Source of the DNA: Podarcis melisellensis
Taxonomy: Eukaryota
Length of the DNA: 64,000 nucleotides
Strand: one strand, 5' to 3'
Assembly (NCBI GenBank): GCA_964234715.1
Contig: OZ174279.1
Positions 41,851-57,587 of this stretch are shown here, in pieces. The notes below the pieces were generated by a model, which worked only from the letters and a program-made list of their open reading frames with translations, had not been told where the DNA came from and made no database searches. Position 1 is the first letter of the stretch. Every line of letters starts with the position of its first letter. The translations under genes were made by a program, and so were the position numbers.

Positions 41851-44159
41851 TATAATCAAAGGAGGGAGAAGGGGGGAAAAAAGGAAAATTGAAATGGTCC
41901 GACATTCATCTTGAGCCACCCATACTAGAAAGGTTTTCAATTTCTTGTTTAAAATAATGTATTTTACTTTTCTTTCTTTTTTTAACCCTGGGTACAGAGG
42001 TGCCAGCTAGTGATGATTGTGATTGGTTGTACTGTCCAGATATGATTGGAGGCAGAGGAGAGAATGAGCAATAGTTTAGGGAAGGTTTGAGGTTCAGAAA
42101 GATGATTGGGTGTGCAATGCATTCCCTTCCCCCCTCTCAATGAAGTTTGTATAGGATTGCAGCATAAATCATATAATTAGGATGGATGAAAGGGAGCATA
42201 GATTTGTATATTATTGATATCAGAGGGTGAAAGGTGTTGATTGCAGAGGAACTGGAGGTAGTACAAGCCTCCTTATATTAGAGGTTTCCAGATGTTGCTC
42301 CTAGGGAAAGACATGTTAGTAGTAACTGTTGGGATTGTATGCCAGAAAGAAAATGAGTAGTGAAAGGAGAACAGCAGCTGCTGTTAGCTGATAGCATTTT
42401 TTTAAAATGTTGTGCCATTTTATATTTTTCAGTAAGTGGAGAAATGATAGGAAATGTCTATAGAAATACGTCATTGTGAAATATACTATATTAAAAAGAT
42501 GTGTGTGCTCTCCCTTCTGATTTTCTTCCGTCTTTTCATCCATCCTGCATAAATATGGACGCTCTCCTCTGGTGTATTTCATTGAGTTGTTTTATAGAAG
42601 TGGCTTGTGGAATACTCTTGACTTCAGCTTTGAATAATATGCAGAATGGTTCAGGAAAACATTTCATTTTTACTAATTGGAATGAATTCAGTCAGGGGTT
42701 CAGGGAGGGAAATGTACCATGGATCTTTTTCTCTTGAGGCGATATCACCATAAATGGCTGCATCTAGAAGCAATTCACAAATTATGAATTGTGAGAGCAG
42801 ATTAATGCTACACTGTGCTGTCGATTATTGACAAGTAAATAGTTCCTTGCCTGGAAACCCCCTGATGCCAAATAGGGCCATCCGAATGCTTCCAAAAGGG
42901 AGCTGTTAAACTGGAAACACCTTGATTCAGAATCAGTGCAATTGTGTGTGAAAATTGAAATGATGCAATCGTTTCCATGTATCATATGAGCATGGAAACA
43001 AACTACAGATAACGAGCATGGCACTGAGCAGCTTAAAATTATTCAAGGAGTTGCTGTTGGCATGTTAAAATAGGAAATATTGCCTTGCAGAATTAAAGTA
43101 CGGCTGTGTTGAAGTGTGAGCATGATACTTAAAAAGAGATTTGTTTGTTTATTAAAAATACAATGAAGTTATATAACTTGAAGTTCAACCATTGATTGAT
43201 AATACTATGTTAGGAAAATGCAAAGAGAAATTTATAGTTATTGTAAATTTAAGAGAAAGGATATTTCAAGTTAATTTACTAGTTTAAAAAAATACCCTTT
43301 TGTGAAATTATTTTATTTTTGTAGAAGCCTTGGACTAGACATAAATCCCCAGTGGCTGGTTATAAAAGTTGAAAATAAAACTGATGATGGGTTTTACCTG
43401 CATGCAGAATGTAATAGCTTGCACTGGGGTTATTTAATGTGTAAATACATTCTGTTCAATGCCATTTGGATTGCCTGTAATTTGGGGCTAATATAGTTTT
43501 ACATATATACTAATGAACTGCATTGCCATCTTGCTGTGAGAGGTCTTCTGTCTGTTAAGGATTTAAAACTGTCTGGGTTTTTAAAAAATCTATTTTGCAG
43601 TGCATCCTGGCTTCCCTGGAAGAATATTACACCTGAGAGATATTGGGATAATTTGTTTTGGTTAATAAATTATTTGGATAGTTATGGAATTTTGACTATA
43701 CTTGATTGTCTTTGCTTGTCGCCCCTGAAACATGTTTATTTATGTATAAACTGTTCTTCCTTTTCAGAAGTTTGGAGCTATTTAAGTAGTTAAAATAAAC
43801 TACAGTTTAAAGTAACATATGGTTTAATGTAATGTGTGAACTACGCCACTGAAAACTGAGCATTTGACTAACCTCATTCTGGACATTGGTATTAAAATCT
43901 TTGTGACATACAGCTTGGGACAGTGGATTGTCACATCTTCCTTATTTTAGCAAGCCCTTTATAACATAATTATTAAGTTCAATAATATTTTGTGGGCAAT
44001 ATTCCATGTTCTTAATTTCAGATTTGGATGCGTCTTGCAACACCAGATTTTATGTTTGTATTTGTAAATTTGAAAATTTGCCACTTTTTTATTTTTAAAA
44101 TGCCACCATTTTCCATTTTTCAATCTTTGGTTTTCTAGTAATTTCACATATTTAGAGGA

Positions 44160-44160
<1 letters not shown>

Positions 44161-44208
<48 letters not shown>
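44161..44208. repeat. (AAT)n microsatellite
   Basis: Direct reading. Confidence 0.95.
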
Positions 44209-44210
<2 letters not shown>

Positions 44211-44273
44211 TGATGCAGGCTCTCCATTATGAAACACAGGTTGTGTTACTTTTGTTTTGCCACTGCTGCTATA

Positions 44274-44499
44274 CAGTGGTACCTCAGGTTACATACGCTT
44301 CAGGTTACAGACTCCGCTAACCGAGAAATAGTGCTTCAGGTTAAGAACTTTGCTTCAGGATGAGAACAGAAATTGTGCTCCTGCGGTGCGGCGGCAGCAG
44401 GAGGCCCCATTAGCTAAAGTGGTGCTTCAGGTTAAGAACAGTTTCAGGTTAAGTACGAACATCCGGAACAAATTAAGTACTTAACCTGATGTACCACTG
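44274..44499. mobile_element. Same MITE family as 883-1124, opposite orientation
   Basis: Same TIRs and TA flanks; interior is a diverged reverse complement of 883-1124. Confidence 0.85.
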
Positions 44500-44785
44500 T
44501 ATTCAACACAAGATTATTGTTGATCATTGAGGTTCATATTTAAATATCTGCTTAAAGCTTCAGTCCTAATTACATAAGTCGGACTTCCTTCTGAACTAAC
44601 GTGCATAGAATTTACGCTATCTATCTGTGGTCTGATATACTAGCCCTCCCCAACTTGGTGTCCCCCAAATGTTTTGGAAAACAGCTCCCATTATCTATGA
44701 CCACTGGGCATGCTGACCACTGTGTTTTAGGCAAATGCAACAGAATATTTGCAGGTCTATTATGTATTTATTTTGCTATGCCCAT

Positions 44786-45193
44786 TGTCAGGGAACTGCC
44801 ATCTAAAGCGCCGGGGGCGCAAAGGCTCACTGAGGTTGAGAGAGGAGTAGCAGCGGAAGAGGGAACCAGTAGAGGGCGAGCAAGAACTCCAAGGGAAAGT
44901 GAGTCGGAGGGATGGCTCAGAGACGCTTCCAGCGAAAACAGTGGGGAGGTCTCAGGACCTCCTATAGGGACACCCACACCTCGCCGGAAACTGTCACGCG
45001 GAGAGGCCAGACGACGTGTTTCCGTTAAAGAGCTTTTATGTTGGAAACGATTCCGAAAGCAGCCACTTTCGGATTCTACTAGTGATTGACGCAGCCATGC
45101 TGGAGGGGCTCCGTCACAGGCAGAGGTTTGAAAACCTGATCAAACTCTGAGGGACTTGCATTTTACGCACAAGCAGCTCATCGTCCCATCACA
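44786..45193 (+). repeat. Gypsy 5' LTR
   Basis: TGTCAGGGAACT...CCCATCACA, direct repeat of 49876-50283. Confidence 0.96.
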
Positions 45194-45195
45194 GC

Positions 45196-45206
45196 AATCC
45201 GAAAGT
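45196..45206 (+). promoter_or_regulatory. Self-priming primer binding site
   Basis: AATCCGAAAGT is the exact reverse complement of ACTTTCGGATT at 45065-45075 within the LTR; no TGG-type tRNA PBS after the LTR. Confidence 0.8.
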
Positions 45207-45239
45207 CACCGAAAGCCAGCTTGTGCAGGGAGAAGCATC

Positions 45240-46259
45240 ATGAGCAACCCAGCCGGAACCGGAGGAGCAGGAGCAGCTGGAGGGGGTCCAAGCCTGGAAG
45301 AAAGGTACAGGGCGTTGGAGATCCAGTTGGCGCTGCAAACGGCGAGGCTTGAGGAGAGGAGGGCTCAGGATGCAGAAAAGGGAAAGGAGAAAACCACCCC
45401 GCTCGCCAGAAAGGTGCCAGGATTGGTGCAGAAATTCGGGGGGGATCCCAGGAACTATCATGCCTTTAGAACAGAGATGCAATACGCTCTAAACTTGCAG
45501 TTTGATGACTTCCCCGACGAGGAATCGCGAGTGGCTTTTGTGATTGGCCATCTCGAATCCGGGGCGAAGGATTGGGTTAGACCCCTGATGGCAGCGAATA
45601 ATGAGATCCTAAAGGACACGAGGAAGTTTTTTCGTGCCATGGACCTGATGTTTTCCAGCGATATTGAGCAGGGGGTGGTGCGAAGGCAGTTAATGGCTTG
45701 CCAGCAAGGAAGCAGATCTGTCCGTGAGTACTGGACTGAGTTTACTATGCTGATTCATAAATTGGGGTGGGACCTATCGGCGGAGCCCATCCAAATGCTT
45801 TTCGAAGAGGGGCTTTCTTCAACCGTCAAAGATGAGCTTTCCCGGGGGCCCAGGGCGGAGTCTATGGATCAGTTAACCAAATCTGCGCTGTGCATAGGAG
45901 CGCGCCAGGAGGCGAGGGCTTTGGAAAAGCGGGAAGGGAAAGGAGACCGTTGGAGGGAGTTCCGCATTCCAGACATTCCAGAGCCACCTTTCCCGCCGGC
46001 AGAGCCGATGGAAGTTGGAACAGCGCGGGCGCGCGCAGTTTCAAATCCCAGTGACGGGCGGAAGAAGGAGGGAAGGAGCGCCAAGAGATGTTATCTCTGC
46101 CAACAGCCAGGGCACTTTGCCAGAGTCTGCCCACAAAGAAAGGAATGGCAAGGGATGGCAGGAGCTGTTGGGGGAAAGGAAGAGGAAGGCAAGGAGCAAG
46201 TAAAAGCCAACGCCTGGCTGCCACCGTCGGGGCACAGCAGCCAGGCCAAAGAGCAGTGA
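45240..46259 (+). CDS. Gypsy Gag (339 aa from first ATG after the PBS), capsid-like domain plus CCHC zinc knuckle
   Basis: ORF-track frame 45156-46259, first ATG at 45240; KFGGDPRNYHAF, QGSRSVREY, FEEGLS and CYLCQQPGHFARVC motifs. Confidence 0.9.
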   Translation: MSNPAGTGGAGAAGGGPSLEERYRALEIQLALQTARLEERRAQDAEKGKEKTTPLARKVPGLVQKFGGDPRNYHAFRTEMQYALNLQFDDFPDEESRVAFVIGHLESGAKDWVRPLMAANNEILKDTRKFFRAMDLMFSSDIEQGVVRRQLMACQQGSRSVREYWTEFTMLIHKLGWDLSAEPIQMLFEEGLSSTVKDELSRGPRAESMDQLTKSALCIGARQEARALEKREGKGDRWREFRIPDIPEPPFPPAEPMEVGTARARAVSNPSDGRKKEGRSAKRCYLCQQPGHFARVCPQRKEWQGMAGAVGGKEEEGKEQVKANAWLPPSGHSSQAKEQ

Positions 46260-49200
46260 AAGTGCCCATGCCGGAACCTCCCAGACCCGCTTTAGTGATA
46301 GAGGTGTTACTAGAACTGCCAAACGGACACCCACTAAAGATCAAGGCGCTTTTGGATTCAGGCAGCTCCTGTAATTTCATGAGTAAGGAGTTTGCAGCTG
46401 AGCACCAGATACAGACCATCCCTTTAAGTAACCCCTTGCAGGTGACTACGATTGACGGCAGAGAGCTGTTGGGGGGAGAAGTTAGCCAACAGACTGTCCC
46501 GATGATAATGAGGGTGGCAAGGCACACCGAACAGATAGCGTTTAATGTGGCCATCCTGGGAGGAGCGCCCATCATTTTGGGGATGAGCTGGCTGGCGCTA
46601 CACGATCCGCTAGTGGGCTGGCATCAGAGGGTGGTCTCCTTTGGGTCAGCGCATTGCCTAGAACACTGCAAGGAGGGGAAGGTTTCGGGAGGAGACAGAG
46701 TCACCCTAGCCGGGATGGAAGTAATGGACAAAGGGAAGGTGCCCCCGCAATACGCAGATCTGAGCAACGTATTCAGCGAAAGGGAAGCAGACAAACTGCC
46801 ACCGCATAGACCCTTTGACTGTCAAATCAACCTACTCCCTGGGGCCCAACTCCCAGTAGGCAAGCTGTACGCCATGTCAGACAGGGAGATGCAGGAGCTG
46901 AGGGAGTTCATTGACAAAAACCTGAAGCGAGGTTTCATCAGAGAGTCCCGAGCGGTGGGGGGCAGCCCAGTGTTTTTTGTGGACAAAAAGAACACAGACA
47001 AACCGAGACTGGTGTGTGACTTTAGGGCCCTCAATGCAGTGTCGGAGCCCCTGGCTTTCCCTATGCCCCGAATTGATGACATTTTGACCAGAGTAAGGAA
47101 GGGAAAGATTTTTACAAAGCTGGACCTGCGGGGGGCGTACAATCTGATACGCATAAGGAAGGGAGATGAATGGAAGACCACCATGTTTACCCCTTTGGGA
47201 GCCTTTGAATACCTCGTTATGCCCTTCGGTCTACAAGGGGGCTCCGCGTGTTTTCAAGCTTTTATAAACCACGTTCTGGGACCTTTGCTCTACAAGAATT
47301 GTGTGGCCTTTTTAGACGACGTGTTGGTGTATTCGGAAGATGAGGAACAGCATGTGAGGGACGTTCGAGAAGTGTTGGGCAGGCTGCAAGCCAACCAGCT
47401 GTGGGTGAAACTGGAGAAGTGCCAGTTTCATACCAAGGAGGTGGAATTCCTGGGGTACCGCTTGTCAGACAAGGGATTGGCCATGGATCCAGGCAAGGTC
47501 CAAGCGGTACTGGAATGGAAGACACCGAAGACCAAGAAGGACGTGCAAAGATTCTTGGGGTTTGGGAACTTTTATCGGAAGTTCATCAAGAACTTTGCCC
47601 ACTTGACGGCGCCCATCACCGACTGCCTCAGCAGCAAGAAGAAATTTGTTTGGACGGTAGAGGCGGATCGAGCCTTTGAAGAACTGAAAAGGGCTTTCGC
47701 CTCGGAAGAACAACTTCTGCATGTGGATTTACGAAAACCCATGAGAGTGGAAACCGATGCATCCGACCGGGCGGTAGGGGCGGTCCTTCTTCAACCGGGG
47801 AGGAGTGCGTCGGAGTGGAGACCGTGTGCCTTCTTCTCGCGGAAGCTGAATAAATCCGAGAGGAATTACACGGTGTATGACAGGGAACTACTTGCCATTC
47901 ACGAAGCATTCCGGAGGTGGAGACATTTATTAATTGGGGCACAACACAAGGTGCAAGTGTGCACCGACCGCAAGAATTTAGAGTATTGGAGAACAGCTCG
48001 AGTGCTCAACCAACGACAAGTGAGATGGGCACAGGAATTCTCCAAATTCAACTTTGAAATTTGTTATGTGCCAGGCCCAGAAAACGTCAGGGCGGACACG
48101 CTCTCACGCAAACCAGAGTATTGGGAAGGGGAGGGGGTGATCGAAGAGAGACATGTCATCCCTGAGGACCGCTGGGTGTGTGGGGCGGCGCTGGTGGGGC
48201 AACGAGAACTGGTAGAGGAAACGGAAAATGATGAATATGCCCAGGATAAGCTCAGAGGTCTCAGGGGGGAGGGCGAGAGCCCCGGAGGTTTTGAGGAAAG
48301 AAATGGGGCATTGTATTACAAAGGGGCACTGTATATACCCGAAGGTGAATTGAGGGGGAGAGTACTCAAGCAGTTGCATGATAGCCCCACGGCGGGACAT
48401 TTTGGACAACACAAGACCATGTGGTTGGTTACCAGGGAATTTTGGTGGCCCAAGGTGAGGGAAGATGTAAGGGAGTATGTAAGAGGGTGTGACCAATGTC
48501 AGCGAGCCAAAGGGGAAAGAAGGGCGCCGGCAGGGTTATTAGAACCATTACCCACACCAGAACGGCCTTGGGAAGCGATATCAATAGATTTTATGACGGA
48601 TCTGCCAAAGTCCAAGGGGAAAACAGCCATCATGGTAGTAGTAGACCTGTTAACTAAGATGTGCCACTTTGTAGCATGCTCACATGCAGTCACAGCGGAA
48701 GAAACAGCGAAGTTGTTTGTAGAACACATCTTTAGGTTGCACGGGGCTCCCTTGAGGGTGATCTCAGATCGCGGCAAACAATTTACTTCCAGGTTCTGGA
48801 GGAAGCTCATGAGCTTGCTGCACGTGGAAGTCAATTTTTCAACTGCCCGGCACCCTGAAACCAACGGGCAGGCGGAAAGAGCAAATGGCATTCTTCAACA
48901 ATATCTGAGGTGTTATGTCAATGACAGAGAGAACGATTGGGTCGAAAAGTTGGCGTTGGCAGAATTTGCCTACAATAATGCGGAGAATGTGTCCACAGGG
49001 ATGAGTCCCTTTTTGGCTAATTACGGGTGTCACCCCAGGGCATTTCCAGGGGAAGGAGGGGAGAGATGGAGCGTCCCAGCGGCTGAACATTTTGTAGAAG
49101 AGATGGAAGCGATCCATCATCAGCTCCAGCTCAACTTAGAAAGGGCTAAGGCACAATATAAGAAGCAGGCAGACAAGAACAGAAGGGAAGGTGAAACCAT

Positions 49201-50179
49201 AAGGGTGGGGGATCAAGTGTGGTTGTCAACCCAAGGGTTGCCGTTCAAAGGGGGTTGTAAGAAATTGAGGCCCAGAAGATTGGGACCCTTTGAGGTCATT
49301 CAGCAGGTCAACCCGGTAGCTTTCAAACTCCGATTACCCAACCACATGAAATTGCACCCAGTGTTCCACAGGTCGTTACTGTCACCATACAGGGGGGGAC
49401 GTGAAGGGGAGTACGTCAGGGGACCAGCCTTGGAAGAGAGGGAACGCCGCAACCATGTAGCGGAAATCCTCGATTCCAGGTGGAAGGGAAATCAGGTGGA
49501 GTATTTGGTGGCGTGGGAAGGGGAACCGGAGTCAGAAAACACCTGGGTGAATGCAGAGGAAGTCAATGACGAGGTTTTAACAGAAACGTTCCACCAAAGG
49601 TTCCCGAGGAAACCTCAGCCGATAGCAAGGTTTAGGAGGGAGTATTTCGGCACCACCGATGAGGAAGAGGAAATGGAAGGGTTCGCGGAGTCGGAGTTGG
49701 AAGAGGGAGTGGACTCCGATGACGAAGATTACCGAGAGAGTAGGAACAGCAACAAGTGGAGGGAAGTGTTCGCGACGTCGGAAGACGAAGGAGGTTCTTT
49801 CAGGGGTTTTACCTCCTCACCGCCAGTAGGGGAGGAGACGGGAGGGGGTGAAGGGGGCCCTGGAGGGGAGGTGGATGTCAGGGAACTGCCATCTAAAGCG
49901 CCGGGGGCGCAAAGGCTCACTGAGGTTGAGAGAGGAGTAGCAGCGGAAGAGGGAACCAGTAGAGGGCGAGCAAGAACTCCAAGGGAAAGTGAGTCGGAGG
50001 GATGGCTCAGAGACGCTTCCAGCGAAAACAGTGGGGAGGTCTCAGGACCTCCTATAGGGACACCCACACCTCGCCGGAAACTGTCACGCCGAGAGGCCAG
50101 ACGACGTGTTTCCGTTAAAGAGCTTTTATGTTGGAAACGATTCCGAAAGCAGCCACTTTCGGATTCTACTAGTGATTGA
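46088..50179 (+). CDS. Gypsy Pol (expected to be expressed by -1 frameshift from gag): protease, RT, RNase H, integrase, chromodomain, acidic tail, LTR-encoded extension
   Basis: ALLDSGS (PR); KLDLRGAY, MPFGL, FLDD (RT); ETDASD, YDRELLA (RH); HDSPTAGH..CDQC and IDF/SDRG/QAER with D(35)E spacing (IN); LGPF; EYLVAWEG..NTW (chromo). No internal stops. Confidence 0.95.
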   Translation: MLSLPTARALCQSLPTKKGMARDGRSCWGKGRGRQGASKSQRLAATVGAQQPGQRAVKVPMPEPPRPALVIEVLLELPNGHPLKIKALLDSGSSCNFMSKEFAAEHQIQTIPLSNPLQVTTIDGRELLGGEVSQQTVPMIMRVARHTEQIAFNVAILGGAPIILGMSWLALHDPLVGWHQRVVSFGSAHCLEHCKEGKVSGGDRVTLAGMEVMDKGKVPPQYADLSNVFSEREADKLPPHRPFDCQINLLPGAQLPVGKLYAMSDREMQELREFIDKNLKRGFIRESRAVGGSPVFFVDKKNTDKPRLVCDFRALNAVSEPLAFPMPRIDDILTRVRKGKIFTKLDLRGAYNLIRIRKGDEWKTTMFTPLGAFEYLVMPFGLQGGSACFQAFINHVLGPLLYKNCVAFLDDVLVYSEDEEQHVRDVREVLGRLQANQLWVKLEKCQFHTKEVEFLGYRLSDKGLAMDPGKVQAVLEWKTPKTKKDVQRFLGFGNFYRKFIKNFAHLTAPITDCLSSKKKFVWTVEADRAFEELKRAFASEEQLLHVDLRKPMRVETDASDRAVGAVLLQPGRSASEWRPCAFFSRKLNKSERNYTVYDRELLAIHEAFRRWRHLLIGAQHKVQVCTDRKNLEYWRTARVLNQRQVRWAQEFSKFNFEICYVPGPENVRADTLSRKPEYWEGEGVIEERHVIPEDRWVCGAALVGQRELVEETENDEYAQDKLRGLRGEGESPGGFEERNGALYYKGALYIPEGELRGRVLKQLHDSPTAGHFGQHKTMWLVTREFWWPKVREDVREYVRGCDQCQRAKGERRAPAGLLEPLPTPERPWEAISIDFMTDLPKSKGKTAIMVVVDLLTKMCHFVACSHAVTAEETAKLFVEHIFRLHGAPLRVISDRGKQFTSRFWRKLMSLLHVEVNFSTARHPETNGQAERANGILQQYLRCYVNDRENDWVEKLALAEFAYNNAENVSTGMSPFLANYGCHPRAFPGEGGERWSVPAAEHFVEEMEAIHHQLQLNLERAKAQYKKQADKNRREGETIRVGDQVWLSTQGLPFKGGCKKLRPRRLGPFEVIQQVNPVAFKLRLPNHMKLHPVFHRSLLSPYRGGREGEYVRGPALEERERRNHVAEILDSRWKGNQVEYLVAWEGEPESENTWVNAEEVNDEVLTETFHQRFPRKPQPIARFRREYFGTTDEEEEMEGFAESELEEGVDSDDEDYRESRNSNKWREVFATSEDEGGSFRGFTSSPPVGEETGGGEGGPGGEVDVRELPSKAPGAQRLTEVERGVAAEEGTSRGRARTPRESESEGWLRDASSENSGEVSGPPIGTPTPRRKLSRREARRRVSVKELLCWKRFRKQPLSDSTSD
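46212..46267 (+). promoter_or_regulatory. Predicted H-type RNA pseudoknot stimulating gag-pol -1 frameshift
   Basis: Stem 1 GCCTGGCTGC (46212-46221)/GCAGCCAGGC (46237-46246); stem 2 GGGCAC (46230-46235)/GTGCCC (46262-46267); located at the gag/pol overlap. Confidence 0.75.
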
Positions 50180-50283
50180 CGCAGCCATGCTGGAGGGGCT
50201 CCGTCACAGGCAGAGGTTTGAAAACCTGATCAAACTCTGAGGGACTTGCATTTTACGCACAAGCAGCTCATCGTCCCATCACA
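49876..50283 (+). repeat. Gypsy 3' LTR (first 304 nt encode the Pol C-terminus)
   Basis: Direct repeat of the 5' LTR, preceded by purine-rich GGAGGGGAGGTGGA; pol stop at 50177-50179. Confidence 0.96.
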
Positions 50284-52383: not shown

Positions 52384-52729
52384 AGGCATACCCGCCGACA
52401 TTTCTCCAATGAAAATAGGGACATCCGATTCCATAATGATAATTTTACTGTTTTTACACCACCCATCTTACTGGGTTGCCCCAGCCACTTTGGGCAGCTT
52501 CCAACATATATAAAAACATAATAAACTATTAAACATTTTAAAAAATCCCCATGCAGGATTGCCTTCAGATGGCTCGGGGGGTTAGATAACACCATACCCT
52601 CCAACATTTCTCCCATGAAAATAGGGGCATCCTAAGGAAAATTGGGACATTCTGGGATCAAATCAGAAACTGGGACGGCTTTTTTAAATCAGGGATGTCT
52701 CTGGAAAATAGGGATACTTGGAGGGTCTG
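52384..52729. mobile_element. Composite repeat: duplicated MITE-like left end enclosing an L2-like 3' fragment
   Basis: CATACCC..ACATTTCTCC.ATGAAAATAGGG occurs at ~52387 and ~52593; right end TTGGAGGGTCTG. Confidence 0.55.
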
Positions 52730-53002
52730 CGAAGGTGATAGCTTGGTAACCTCCACCATTCTCTAGCAACAGTCCAGTGATGTAATAATGATTCATAATG
52801 GCTAAAGACATTGTTGTCTACTACTGTCCCCAGCCAGTCGATGTGCCATTGTTTTCATATCCTGAAAACAAAGGAAGATGTGGTCTCTTACCTCAATATA
52901 AGTTGGGGAGAAGTGCTATGGAGATCTTTAAATGCTCACAGGATAGGCAAGCACCATACAGAGACTCTAAATTATGGCGACCATGTTGCTGATGGTGAGA
53001 GA

Positions 53003-53463
53003 TGTGCGAATATATCGATCTGGCCCTTGATCGATAGAGCCGCGACTTCAGACAGCTATACGATCCCAATCAATCACTTACAGCGGTCCGGCACGCTTCC
53101 TCCCAAGCTGCGCAATAACTCCTGCTGTCTCTTCTCAGTCACGGCTTTTAGCAGAGTAGAACACAGCGTGTAAAGCAGTCTCACTCCTTGTAAGCACACA
53201 TAGACAGGTGTGTCTATTTACAGCTCTTTATTACAACATTTCAGCATCAAAGTCCGTCACTGCTGGCAGCCATTGCTGCAAACATGTCTCCCTCTCAGAT
53301 ACACAGAGGGAACATCCTTCTCCCCTCAGAGTCACAGGGGGACTGAACAACAGGGAATAGTCCCGCCCAGCTTCTAAAGCTTCTGTCTCCGCCCAGCTGT
53401 AAGCTGACGTCAGCAGGTGACACACACCAGGGAATTTAACCAGATAAATTCTGAACTATAACA
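53003..53463 (-). repeat. Copia 3' LTR
   Basis: Copy of 56511-56971 preceded by the PPT; minus-strand AATAAA at 53227-53232. Confidence 0.95.
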
Positions 53464-56189
53464 CCCCCCCTTGTGTCCCTGCGTGATACCTGTGCAACAT
53501 CTTCAGTAACACCTTGTGAGATCAATCCCTTCCCCAATGCCTTGCGCCTTCCCTTGGCAAACCTGTTTGGCATTTGTGGAACCACCTCACAACTCTCAGA
53601 ATCACACTGTGCGAAACTTACCCACGCACCTGTGGCCTGGTACCTCTCTGGTGGGATACCTTTAGTTGTGCGACTGGACCTCCTAGGCACAAACTCAGGT
53701 GTTCCCTCTGACTCACTTTGATCAGCAAGTGTGTCCTCTGCATCACGGGATTCTCCTTCTGACTTAAAGCGTCTTCGAATCCTCTCCATCACACTCACAG
53801 GAGAACTAGGCTCACTCTTGGGCAGTCTCTTAACAGCTTGTGGAGATGCCCTATCCTGCTCCTGACCCTGGTCAGTGACCTGGTCGTCATCAGCAGCCTC
53901 AGCCTCTTCTTCCTCTGCCTCATCAGAACTGTCTTCTGGATCAGAGAGACATTCTGAGAGAACATCACGCCTGACAGGAGTCTTTGACTTTACCTCCTCC
54001 TCTAAGAACTCAGCGTGTTTACTGATCAGCACCTTACTCTGATCACCTGACGGGTAAGCAAATCGCCATGCACGGGCTTCTGGCTCATACCCACAGAATA
54101 TCATTTTCTGGACTTTGGCTCCATCTGGCCCTTGCAAAGCCTTAGGCACAGAGACAAGCGCAGGAGTCCCAAACGTCCGCAGAAAGTGAACCTGGGGTTT
54201 TCGGCCATTTAACAAAGAGAACGGTGTGTCACCTACCAGTGAGTTGTAGACACGATTCCAGGTGAATGACACAGCCCTCGTAGCCTCCAGCCAAAACTTA
54301 GGAGGTAGCCTGGCTTCTTTCAGCATCACCTGTGCAGCCTTAACCAGAGCTCCACTTCTCAGCTCTGCCACCCCCCCTTGCTGGGGTGAAATAACTGTGT
54401 GACGTATCCCTTTCTGTTGAAAGAACTTCTGCAAAGCAGAACCAGTGTACTTAGCATTTCTGTCACTGATGATCGCTTGAACCCTGGTGGAAAACCTTAG
54501 TTCCACCCCCTCAATCCAGCTCTTGATCAGCTGTGCTGCATCCTCCCTGGATTTGAGACCGTGAGCCCAGGAATTCTGCGAGAAATCATCCAGAAAAGTT
54601 AGCAGAAACCTGGCCCCCCCTAGACTTGGTTCCTTAACAGGACCGGACAAATCTATGTGAACAAGCTCAAAAGGTTTGGTGGCTACACGTTCCACCTTTG
54701 GGTAACTGCACCCTCTCACCTTTGCTTGCTTGCAAGTGGCACAATTAATGGCACTTTGACAATTTCTAATCTTACAACCTGTAACAACCTCAGGTAGCGC
54801 CTGCAAATCCTCTAAAGGATTGTGAATCGTTCTCTGATGCCATACGCATGCACACGTAACATTATGAGCGGGAATTGTAGCACGCTGGTTGGGAACTGTA
54901 GCACGCAACGCTTGTGCTTTCTCAACCTTCCCCTCACCTCCAAGAGACGTTTTAAGAATGAAAAGATCATTCTGTCCCTTCCGCACTTTGGCCAGTAACC
55001 TCCCTCCTCTGGAGATTGTGCAGACATCATTTTCAAAACAAACTTTGAACCCCTTACTTAACAAATAAGGCACAGATAACAAACAGTGATGAATCTCTGG
55101 AACAATACAAAAATCCACCGCCTCCTGCAAAACAGAAAGATAGGCATTAGCGAACTTAGTAACTCTAGTTTTCTGTCCATTCGCGAACTTAATAGTCTGT
55201 CCCTTCGGAACTGCCGTGCAATTCCACATCTCGACTGCAGGGGTCTCTGGAACCATGTTGCGGTTAGCTGCAGAGTCTATTACAAAGGCCATCTCGGGAT
55301 TTTCCACTCGGCCGTCTTCGAACACTGCCATACTCGCAGAAACCTGATAAGACTCTTCTCCCTGCTGTTTACCACGACCACCTGGCTCAGCTCCACGCCT
55401 GCCTGTCTTCCCAGGCCTGTTGCCATGGAAACCCGCCTGGTTCCCATGGGAAAAGTCTTTGCAAACATCCTGCCTCGGCTCTCTGCTCCGGTGGGGGCAA
55501 CTGCCACGCCGACGTTGAACTCCAGTGGAAAAACACTGCCCGGGGCTCCTGCCAGCTGGCCTGGCCTTCCTCCTTCTGGAACGGCGCCTCCCACCAGCCT
55601 GGCCCCCCCTGAAGCTGCTCTCCGCTTCAGCACAAAGCGAAAGCTCTTTAAACTTGCCTTTGGAACTCTTCGCCCCCCCGATCTGCTCACTAGCGCTCCT
55701 AGAGGCCAATCCATCGGGAACAGGGCCTGCCAGTCCAGCCTCTCCAGGACTCAGTCCATCACACAGACGTGTAGAAGCACTACAACAGCTCCCCAACACT
55801 GTCCCAGCCCCCATTGGGCTTTCTGGGCATCCTTCAGCCTCTCCAGGGCTTCCTCCAGGGCTCTGGCCTTTCGCTGACGCCTCACACAAGCCCTTCAGCA
55901 AATTCCAGGCAGCCCACGCTGTCGTTATGCCCTCCAAATGAGGTCTCAGCGATGCATGAACGCATGCTTTGAGCATATTCAGCTCTTGTTGCAGTCTCTG
56001 GCTATCTTCAGCCAACACAGCCCCACAGCCTGCTTCAGCTGCTGGCCAGCCAAGGGGTATTTCTTTTGGCTCCCACTGGTTTGCTTCCCAGAGCCCTTCA
56101 ACCAAGAACAACCCCCTTATTTTTCTGGACCACGTTGCCCAACTCTTTAGAGTTAGAGGCTCCACCGGTATATCCTGGCTTTCAGCCAT
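53436..56189 (-). CDS. Copia Gag-PR-IN polyprotein, 917 aa, no RT/RNase H
   Basis: WATWSRKIRGLFLVEGLWE (gag N-term), FVIDSAA (PR-like), WHQRTIH..CATC (HHCC), PFELVHIDLSGP, FLDDFS, PQQGGVAE, FCGYEP, PRRSSRTTKG; no YVDD motif. Confidence 0.88.
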   Translation of the reverse strand: MAESQDIPVEPLTLKSWATWSRKIRGLFLVEGLWEANQWEPKEIPLGWPAAEAGCGAVLAEDSQRLQQELNMLKACVHASLRPHLEGITTAWAAWNLLKGLCEASAKGQSPGGSPGEAEGCPESPMGAGTVLGSCCSASTRLCDGLSPGEAGLAGPVPDGLASRSASEQIGGAKSSKGKFKELSLCAEAESSFRGGQAGGRRRSRRRKARPAGRSPGQCFSTGVQRRRGSCPHRSREPRQDVCKDFSHGNQAGFHGNRPGKTGRRGAEPGGRGKQQGEESYQVSASMAVFEDGRVENPEMAFVIDSAANRNMVPETPAVEMWNCTAVPKGQTIKFANGQKTRVTKFANAYLSVLQEAVDFCIVPEIHHCLLSVPYLLSKGFKVCFENDVCTISRGGRLLAKVRKGQNDLFILKTSLGGEGKVEKAQALRATVPNQRATIPAHNVTCACVWHQRTIHNPLEDLQALPEVVTGCKIRNCQSAINCATCKQAKVRGCSYPKVERVATKPFELVHIDLSGPVKEPSLGGARFLLTFLDDFSQNSWAHGLKSREDAAQLIKSWIEGVELRFSTRVQAIISDRNAKYTGSALQKFFQQKGIRHTVISPQQGGVAELRSGALVKAAQVMLKEARLPPKFWLEATRAVSFTWNRVYNSLVGDTPFSLLNGRKPQVHFLRTFGTPALVSVPKALQGPDGAKVQKMIFCGYEPEARAWRFAYPSGDQSKVLISKHAEFLEEEVKSKTPVRRDVLSECLSDPEDSSDEAEEEEAEAADDDQVTDQGQEQDRASPQAVKRLPKSEPSSPVSVMERIRRRFKSEGESRDAEDTLADQSESEGTPEFVPRRSSRTTKGIPPERYQATGAWVSFAQCDSESCEVVPQMPNRFAKGRRKALGKGLISQGVTEDVAQVSRRDTRGGVIVQNLSG

Positions 56190-56510
56190 CTTCTCCCGTT
56201 CTCCCGTTCTCCCAAGGGGCCCCTCAAGCTGTACTTACTCCGTACTCAGTGCTCAGTACCAGCTCCTGCGGCTCTCCCTTGCTTGGAGTAACGATTCCAG
56301 CTGCTTTTAGCTCCAGCTGCTTCTCAGCTTCCAGCCAGCTCTCTGTATCAGAAGCTCTCATTGCCTCTCGGAAGCAGGCAATTAATCATTCTTGCTCTCC
56401 GGCACCCAGTCAGCTCCCGTTCCGCTCCTCAGCCGCAGACCGCTGACTTCAAAGACATTCCTGGAGCTCACACCGACTGCTTTACGAGCGTTGGCTGACC
56501 TCCCATAACC

Positions 56511-56971
56511 TGTGCGAATATATCGATCTGGCCCTTGATCGATAGAGCCGCGACTTCAGACAGCTATACGATCCCAATCAATCACTTACAGCGGTCCGGC
56601 ACGCTTCCTCCCAAGCTGCGCAATAACTCCTGCTGTCTCTTCTCAGTCACGGCTTTTAGCAGAGTAGAACACAGCGTGTAAAGCAGTCTCACTCCTTGTA
56701 AGCACACATAGACAGGTGTGTCTATTTACAGCTCTTTATTACAACATTTCAGCATCAAAGTCCGTCACTGCTGGCAGCCATTGCTGCAAACATGTCTCCC
56801 TCTCAGATACACAGAGGGAACATCCTTCTCCCCTCAGAGTCACAGGGGGACTGAACAACAGGGAATAGTCCCGCCCAGCTTCTAAAGCTTCTGTCTCCGC
56901 CCAGCTGTAAGCTGACGTCAGCAGGTGACACACACCAGGGAATTTAACCAGATAAATTCTGAACTATAACA
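56511..56971 (-). repeat. Copia 5' LTR
   Basis: TGTTATAG...TTCGCACA on minus strand, immediately followed by the PBS. Confidence 0.95.
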
Positions 56972-57587
56972 AGAGAGCGTTTAAACTTGGAGCAACAAGG
57001 AGGGAACTATGGAGGAAAACAGAAACTGAAAGCTCAGCAAGAATGATTTCTTGATAGTTTTGTGCAATTTCAACCTTGTTTTGGAAGCTTTTGGAACAAC
57101 ATCCTCTCATTTAGCATTCCTTTTGTCTTCCATGGTTTGGCAGTAACTCTAACAAATGTAGTGCTTTTTTTTAGTCACAGTATCTAACAATTAGTTAGCC
57201 GGTGGCAACATACACTTCCCATAGGATGTTGCTTCTCATTCCCAACTAGAGTAAGATGATGACTAAAGATGACAGATCTATTAATTATCCATGCATGTTT
57301 GGTTGTTTTCTTCAGCCTTAAGGATTCCACTTAATGCAGATCACATTGAAACTGCCGGAAGGATTGTGGTGTCCATGTATGACAGGAGTGAAGCTCTCCC
57401 TTCCAAAGGACACCTACGTAGTTTGTGTGCACCTCTTACAGGCAATCTGAAATAATTTGTAGAAGCAGGGATGTGTGAAAGTGCCTTAGTCCATTCTGAC
57501 ATCCATTCACACTTGTAATGTGGTATTTTCCATTCTGTTGCAATTGGTTTATTTTGCATAAGTCTTTCTTCCATTTTGTCATCTACC

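Follow-up and report, generated by a model that had tools for sequence, protein, structure and literature searches.

The window analysed here is a 64,000-nucleotide stretch of the Podarcis melisellensis genome (GenBank assembly GCA_964234715.1, contig OZ174279.1). On its minus strand, at 56971..53003, is a 3,969 bp mobile element of the Ty1/Copia type. Between its two long terminal repeats (LTRs) a single open reading frame (ORF) takes up 90% of the internal region. This frame runs for 917 codons without an internal stop, as the initial annotation of the sequence had described, and the other five frames contain 25–71 stops each. The translated sequence carries parts of Gag, a protease-like domain and an integrase, and ends in a disordered tail. 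Reverse transcriptase (RT) and ribonuclease H (RNase H) are absent. The element belongs to a multi-copy family in which the same deficiency recurs, and it is hypothesized that the family is mobilised in trans by an autonomous Copia element while its own protein still contributes to its propagation. Coordinates of the features are collected in Table 1.

Table 1. Features of the RT-less Copia element in the Podarcis melisellensis window, listed from its 5′ to its 3′ end; window positions count from the first base of the 64,000-nucleotide stretch
Feature	Window position	Strand	Residues	Basis and remarks
Target site duplication beside 5′ LTR	56972..56976	.		AGAGA (+ strand), perfect 5-bp match
5′ LTR	56511..56971	-		461 bp
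Untranslated leader	56190..56510	-		between 5′ LTR and ORF
Single ORF	53436..56189	-	917 codons	Gag N-terminus, low-complexity stretch, protease-like domain, integrase, tail
Gag N-terminal helical domain	55860..56189	-	1-110	tblastn, invariant residues, pLDDT 83-96
Gly/Ser/Arg-rich low-complexity stretch	55299..55859	-	111-297	pLDDT ~30; composition
Gag knuckle remnant	55497-55535	-	219-231	C219, C231 kept; C222T; His lost
Protease-like beta-barrel	54942..55298	-	298-416	Pol_BBD match, alignment, confident beta fold
Protease-like motif positions		-		D305, S306 kept; W302F, G307A, H311N, G347A changed
Integrase	53982..54857	-	445-736	HHCC zinc domain, DDE core, SH3-like domain
Integrase HHCC		-	H451, H456, C483, C486	all kept, none changed; invariant columns
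Integrase core, kept		-	D513, D576, E609	invariant columns
Integrase core, changed				Y528F, K548R, R574I, G578N, E580K, N605G, R610L, N612S, R613G, E617K
SH3-like domain		-		most conserved columns kept; Q686, K688P, K706R changed
Integrase-RT linker and first RT-region residues	53517..53981	-	737-891	disordered, acidic, Ser-rich; pLDDT <50
Junction-to-LTR stretch	53464..53516	-	~17 codons	includes the polypurine tract; sequence; homology to full-length relatives ends at ~aa 891
Polypurine tract	53480-53464	-		purine-rich, seven terminal G, abuts 3′ LTR
3′ LTR	53003..53463	-		461 bp; TG..CA termini
ORF 3′ terminus	53436..53463	-	last 9 codons and stop	read from the 3′ LTR start (U3)
Target site duplication beside 3′ LTR	52998..53002	.		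AGAGA (+ strand), sequence inspection

The loss of RT and RNase H, which the initial annotation had recognised, is supported by two lines of evidence. Pfam matches in the ORF are limited to rve (residues 504–603), SH3_retrovirus (662–733) and a weak Pol_BBD (303–381, E = 0.19), and no RVT_2 or RNase H domain is detected, RVT_2 having been sought up to E = 1. In addition, the alignment of the ORF with its Copia relatives ends where RT begins. Up to that point the domain order is colinear with that of three relatives (P0022, P0030 and P0031): Gag N-terminus, Pol_BBD-like barrel, rve, SH3_retrovirus, linker and the first RT residues. From its sequence the element is thus classed as a Copia derivative and not as a complete member of the group.

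The point of loss can be located closely. Residues 823–891 share 49% identity with residues 835–902 of P0022, the full-length polyprotein (1,385 amino acids) of a Podarcis Copia element, and the matching segment of P0022 comprises the integrase-RT linker together with the initial RT residues. Homology to full-length relatives stops there, which places the deletion junction at ~53516/53517. Downstream are 17 codons derived from the sequence that precedes the polypurine tract (PPT) and from the PPT itself. Because the linker is fused to this sequence, the ORF brings no stop codon with it and is terminated by one 27 nucleotides inside the 3′ LTR. The missing RT and RNase H correspond to ~480 residues. 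As relatives have 483 residues past the junction, an old internal deletion of ~1.4–1.5 kb is inferred. GT- and AG-like sites are close to the junction, and the deletion may conceivably have arisen when a subgenomic RNA was spliced; the present state of the element would be the same either way. The end of the ORF had earlier been likened to a C-terminal stub of RNase H. This assignment does not hold, as residues 823–891 align with the linker and the start of RT, and the remainder is PPT and LTR sequence. The resemblance of SRRDTRGGVIV to the RNase H motif RRSTxGyvf falls on the PPT and the LTR start and is judged to be due to chance.

Evidence for a family comes from one annotated protein and from sequencing runs. 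Among 1.84 billion protein representatives the only close match is P0029 (Podarcis muralis XP_077785850.1, ‘uncharacterized protein LOC144327940’), which aligns with residues 622–909 of the ORF at 88–92% amino-acid identity. P0029 displays the same RT-less junction, the same PPT-encoded residues and the same LTR start. It enters the LTR in a different frame, however, and ends after 17 codons; for this reason the LTR-encoded end of the ORF is accidental and not a conserved feature. The P0029 gene model is the integrase C-terminus and tail of a sibling transposon copy that reads into the LTR. LOC144327940 and comparable P. muralis gene models are thereby explained: they are transposon ORFs and not host genes.

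In public sequencing runs that carry four species labels and come from seven studies, 27–60% of the internal 31-mers of the element are present. In one organism (A), 20–33 distinct contigs cover single variant sites. In a DNA run of a second organism (B), termed X6, a contig extends at least 94 nucleotides to each side of position 53527 and therefore takes in the junction as well as the LTR boundary, at a depth of 304 compared with ~9.5 for a contig of the single-copy flank. Another run of organism B, X15, contains a 466-nucleotide contig (contig 10, depth 474) that covers 53349–53807. Summed over the element, depth exceeds that of the unique flank by two to three orders of magnitude in organism A and by one to two in organism B. 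These depths are not copy numbers and are read only as tens to hundreds of copies. The junction is therefore common to several copies, P0029 and the contigs of X6 and X15 among them, and the element is a member of a multi-copy family that shares the RT-less junction and has copies in at least one other species. The recurrence of the deletion had been proposed as a check on the initial annotation and is now observed. Internal deletions are common during reverse transcription, and the element could on that ground have been a single dead-on-arrival derivative of a complete family. With the same junction in the P. muralis protein and in multi-copy contigs of another species, this explanation is rejected.

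The nearest full-length autonomous Copia elements found are a Podarcis cluster represented by P0007 and P0022 (1385–1386 amino acids), at 31–38% identity, and a word search with the whole ORF retrieved relatives at 25–33% identity only. The exact ORF sequence is not in the protein collection, and a fragment search with residues 259–555 found no short sibling proteins. No match was obtained in JGI metagenomes, searched both with the protein and with the PPT/LTR pattern, or in viral contigs; the phage collection also gave none, as expected. The ESM Atlas returned only generic Copia gag-protease-integrase clusters, mostly from plants and fungi. The second-closest relative is P0030, a 1065-amino-acid translation from an ENA contig with 36–37% identity. 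It is a Copia polyprotein with an open frame, and the alignment lacks most of its RT and RNase H; other internally deleted and still open Copia derivatives thus exist. In a further run, X1, contigs join position 53943 to 55357 (1,413 nucleotides skipped) and 54696 to 55419 (722 nucleotides skipped). These joints suggest further-deleted derivatives of the same family.

The copy in the window was inserted very recently. The two LTRs are identical at 461 of 461 bases and both have TG..CA termini, and AGAGA is present on both sides as a perfect target site duplication (TSD); the initial annotation was correct on these points. A TSD of 5 bp is usual for Ty1/Copia, and in its termini and TSD the element conforms to that group. 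As there are no differences in 461 bp, the insertion is roughly 2–3 million years old at most, a figure that presumes about 1–2 × 10⁻⁹ substitutions per site per year. Two contigs point in the same direction. A 940-nucleotide single-copy contig in run X4, from another individual whose species label is that of the best-matching run, stays aligned as far as 53002, where the TSD ends, and continues with 633 nucleotides of non-LTR sequence. A contig of organism B in run X6, which comes from the unique flank, stops aligning at 53001 and also continues as other sequence. Compared at one flank, both suggest an empty insertion site. Identical LTRs, a TSD, many copies and an apparent empty site elsewhere are not properties of a domesticated host gene of the GIN1 type.

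The remaining enzyme domains are measurably eroded. The ORF was aligned with 93 Copia relatives, collected by an exhaustive HMMER search and by word searches. In this alignment 68 columns are conserved in at least 85% of the relatives; the ORF covers 67 of them and deviates at 20 (30%). The 73 relatives that cover these columns deviate on average at 3.4 positions, and at no more than 17. The description of the enzymes as degenerate in appearance is therefore confirmed, as are the individual motif changes on which it was based. In the protease-like domain, DSAA is found at residues 305–308 where relatives have DSGA; the position corresponding to residue 307 is Gly in 91% of the 93 relatives, and the D-S/T-G catalytic triplet of retropepsins is replaced by DSA. 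In Gag, the CX2CX4HX4C knuckle of a complete Copia Gag is reduced to a remnant. In the integrase, the HHCC residues and the three catalytic carboxylates of retroviral-type integrases are all present. Their surroundings are altered: the motif SDRNAKY occurs at residues 575–581, D576 and E609 are separated by exactly 32 residues in place of a D(35)E spacing, the conserved neighbours (DxGxE, PQQNG, ERxNR) are changed by G578N, E580K, N605G, R610L, N612S and R613G, and relative to all aligned relatives 3 residues are missing from the loop that precedes the catalytic Glu.

The predicted folds appear to be preserved. An AlphaFold2 model of the ORF, built with an alignment of 94 relatives, has a predicted local distance difference test (pLDDT) score above 90 for residues 10–110, which are helical, for 300–415, which form a beta barrel, and for 445–735; residues 111–297 and 737–917 are of low confidence. 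A Foldseek search with the model finds the integrase structures of foamy virus (PFV) and Rous sarcoma virus (RSV) at E-values of 1e-12 to 1e-9. Most of Gag has been lost. Pfam detects no Gag family in the ORF. Its N-terminus nevertheless matches residues 1–101 of P0030 (tblastn, E = 2e-6) and also P0031 (E = 1e-4), and the invariant alignment columns W20, W95 and L98 are kept. Residues 111–297 occupy the place that the remainder of Gag and the CCHC knuckle have in relatives. When five relatives were compared by tblastn, homology was confined to the ORF's own frame, at residues 1–108 and from ~219 onward, and no Gag homology was detected for residues 109–219 in any frame. A compensated frameshift in mid-Gag was rejected for this reason; the central part of Gag has been replaced or lost, and not frameshifted.

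The pattern of differences among copies was used to ask whether the frame is under selection. Contigs were accepted at 80% or more identity to the element, and the substitution test is limited to the 36 differences inside the ORF with the best support, the data being the top 40 of about 500. There are 20 synonymous and 16 non-synonymous differences and no stops, where 11.1 synonymous changes would be expected with mutation types and CpG context kept equal (P = 0.002; ω ~0.36); the numbers at the three codon positions are 7, 11 and 18. The dN/dS comparison that had been suggested as a check thus yields a synonymous excess. The signal is concentrated in residues 291–740, with 13 synonymous to 7 non-synonymous differences (ω ~0.25). 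It is weaker in residues 1–290 (6 to 6), and the tail of the ORF, with 1 to 3, shows no constraint. P0029 points the same way, as 4 of 115 residues differ in the folded part and 17 of 171 in the tail (P = 0.06). Its in-frame indels were set aside, since an open frame is built into any gene model.

Indels follow a similar course. Those listed inside the ORF are two of -3 and a -1/+1 pair only 3 nucleotides apart, all of which keep the frame. In the LTR and leader they measure 1, 2, 9, 3, 1, 8, 2 and 1 nucleotides, those of 8, 2 and 1 nucleotides being in the leader. In a simulation of neutral drift, the frame remained open in <5% of trials at 3% substitutions and in <1% at 5%; sibling contigs differ from the present copy by 2–5%. 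Several lines of evidence, none of them large, thus agree that the frame appears to be constrained. The excess of synonymous changes implies constraint on the amino-acid sequence itself, chiefly across the protease-like domain and the integrase. The earlier proposal that the family is selected to stay translatable is in this respect supported as to selection, with ω ~0.36 and no stops, and too narrow as to its object, since more than translatability is preserved.

It has been hypothesized that the family consists of parasites mobilised in trans, and the data agree with this. LTRs, a leader with a candidate primer binding site (PBS) and a PPT are all present, no RT or RNase H is encoded, and insertion is recent, and this combination implies that the element is copied by the enzymes of another element. 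The preferred interpretation, to which a probability of about 0.5 is assigned, is a multi-copy, semi-autonomous and trans-mobilised Copia lineage of wall lizards whose protein still matters, probably in a non-catalytic manner and in cis. RT and RNase H of an autonomous Copia element must reverse transcribe the RNA, and the helper's protease is probably also used, as DSAA replaces the usual motif. The Gag N-terminal domain, the protease-like barrel and the integrase with its SH3-like domain might together act as a mainly non-catalytic or weakly catalytic cis factor. Such a factor might bind RNA or cDNA of its own element and bring it into the particles and the integration complex of the helper, and selection on lineages that continue to transpose would preserve the ORF. 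A structural role in cis is favoured because the catalytic surroundings of both protease and integrase are eroded. A more specific version is held only tentatively: an RT-less vertebrate Copia that persists across several lacertids, with purifying selection on an eroded protein that has become a non-enzymatic ‘hitch-hiking’ factor in cis, and with a distantly related helper.

The main alternative is a division of labour, which is possible but unlikely. The element would provide an active integrase that fits its own LTR ends, possibly along with a piece of Gag for packaging, and would borrow only RT/RNase H and protease from a helper. The intact HHCC and DDE residues are consistent with this, as are the confidently predicted integrase fold with its match to solved integrases and the constraint that is strongest over the protease-integrase-SH3 part (ω ~0.25). 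The integrase of a helper, moreover, might not recognise the LTR ends of an element whose nearest autonomous Copia is only 31–38% identical. An active enzyme is difficult to reconcile, however, with the replacement of ten near-invariant core positions around the active site and with the shortened loop before the catalytic Glu. Ranked behind it, and also unlikely, is an explanation that needs no selection on the ORF: the frame might be open because both this copy and its master are young, and mobilisation would depend on LTRs, PBS, PPT and a packaging signal. Many non-autonomous LTR elements, the terminal-repeat retrotransposons in miniature (TRIM) and large retrotransposon derivatives (LARD), need no ORF. 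The identical LTRs leave this copy no time for decay, the end of the frame that is read from the LTR varies between copies, and the tail shows no constraint (1 synonymous to 3 non-synonymous). The synonymous excess (P = 0.002) argues against it. Also, 30% of conserved positions have changed, yet 917 codons are free of stops, where drift of 3% closes the frame 95% of the time. The junction is, in addition, shared across species, from which it follows that the RT-less state is old.

A further alternative is interference, in which a dead Gag/protease/integrase protein would poison the particles or intasomes of autonomous Copia elements and serve in copy-number control or for the benefit of the host. 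Truncated Ty1 Gag products are known to restrict Ty1, and eroded catalytic surroundings within preserved folds would be suitable for such a protein. A helper-dependent element gains nothing by disabling its helper, however, and a multi-copy family with an insertion that is missing from other samples resembles an expanding parasite, so that this explanation is thought quite improbable.

Several considerations weigh against the preferred interpretation of a protein that acts in cis. The role as a cis factor is drawn from analogy and would not in itself count as evidence. Metagenome and viral scans identified no helper with matching LTR ends or PBS. The selection test covers only the 36 best-supported of about 500 differences, and some contigs accepted at 80% identity or more could stem from an unseen autonomous relative whose constraint mimics the signal. 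The indel-length check agrees with expectation in part: all three events inside the ORF keep the frame, but the contrast with 2 of 8 outside it is marginal (P ~0.06). Siblings are represented by contigs and one gene model only; P0029 starts at M622, and that copy may be broken or truncated upstream. High pLDDT values are partly owed to the alignment of relatives rather than to the ORF sequence alone. In addition, the label of X15 as an RNA run, on which the indications of expression depend, is a guess.

These indications are as follows. In X15 element contigs have depths of 370–700, compared with 6,704 for the neighbouring repeat described below; in the DNA run X6 the corresponding values are 250–1,400 and 347,000. 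Depth falls along the LTR from U3 to U5 by 37-fold in X15 and by 2.5-fold in DNA. The pattern in X15 fits RNA, but is suggestive only, as depth is a poor measure and the kind of run is guessed.

The LTR displays motifs of the promoter type. A perfect palindrome that resembles a cAMP response element (CRE) is found at LTR position 52 (53405-53412 and 56913-56920), two GC boxes of the Sp1 type are at positions 70 and 96 of each LTR, and no TATA box was found in the LTR by motif scan. This combination may point to cAMP-responsive or housekeeping-type transcription from the LTR. A single AATAAA is at LTR position 232 (53232-53227 in the 3′ LTR). The first 9 nucleotides of the leader (56510-56502) complement what is taken to be the anticodon loop of initiator tRNA-Met and constitute the candidate PBS; there are no tRNA genes in the window.

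On the plus strand, at 55086-55877, a 263-codon ORF is found antisense to the Gly/Ser/Arg-rich stretch of the main ORF; the skewed and GC-rich base composition most likely accounts for it. Just upstream of the element in the window, at ~44000-50200, is a GC-rich block (48–53% GC) in which both GC and AT skew are strongly positive. The sequence that borders the 3′ LTR, 52403-52813, is a repeat of extremely high copy number that resembles a short interspersed nuclear element (SINE). Its summed contig depth is 10⁵–10⁶, compared with ~9 for unique sequence, it contains two 40-nucleotide direct repeats 206 nucleotides apart, and many contigs have joints and loose ends in it at 52426, 52592 and 52729.

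If the constraint holds genome-wide, it would indicate that retrotransposon proteins can be retained for non-catalytic roles in cis. The family would also offer a natural and still active amniote system for determining what a retrotransposon parasite really needs of Gag, protease and integrase.

The closest functional parallel is the mouse intracisternal A-particle (IAP) element I-delta-1. Its transposition is non-autonomous after a deletion and is promoted in cis by the in-frame gag-pol fusion protein that the element itself encodes (PMC6466679, citing Saito et al. 2008); it is also described as the most active subtype, with helper proteins required in trans (PMC6466679). I-delta-1 and the lizard element have in common an internal deletion that leaves an in-frame fusion ORF, and neither is autonomous. 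IAP, however, is a betaretrovirus-like endogenous retrovirus and not a Copia element, and its deletion removes parts of gag and pol and leaves most pol enzymes. In the lizard element RT and RNase H are wholly gone and the remaining enzyme motifs are eroded. The role in cis is shown for I-delta-1, whereas for the lizard element it is only inferred.

Plants provide other parallels. The Gypsy families RLG_Sabrina_SA, RLG_WHAM and RLG_Quinta are high-copy, semi-autonomous and RT-less with an intact partial ORF; an autonomous partner presumably cross-mobilises them, and they presumably contribute protein themselves (PMC9744471, PMC11302176). They encode GAG with or without protease or a domain of unknown nature and have no integrase, whereas the lizard element has kept its integrase and lost most of Gag. 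Their partners were identified through shared LTR ends and PBS; for the lizard element, metagenome and viral scans gave none. Barley BARE2 is a Copia element that is parasitic on BARE1 and lacks one function (as summarised in PMC9744471). Like the lizard element, it is Copia-type and relies on a related autonomous family. The loss is reversed, however, as BARE2 has no functional Gag and has kept pol, and the lizard element has lost RT and RNase H.

The autonomous Podarcis Copia elements P0007 and P0022 come from the same host group and have the same domain order up to the RT start. Unlike the lizard element, they have an intact CCHC, DSGA, SDRGGEY and D(35)E together with RT and RNase H, and judged by sequence identity they are too distant to represent the recent parent. 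TRIM and LARD elements differ in having no internal coding capacity, whereas here the 917-codon ORF fills nine-tenths of the internal region. A literature search in a limited collection found no description of a vertebrate or reptile Copia element that is without RT and RNase H and retains integrase. Partly coding, trans-mobilised LTR elements are already known from cereals and from mouse IAP; the present element is an RT-less amniote Copia that has kept its integrase.

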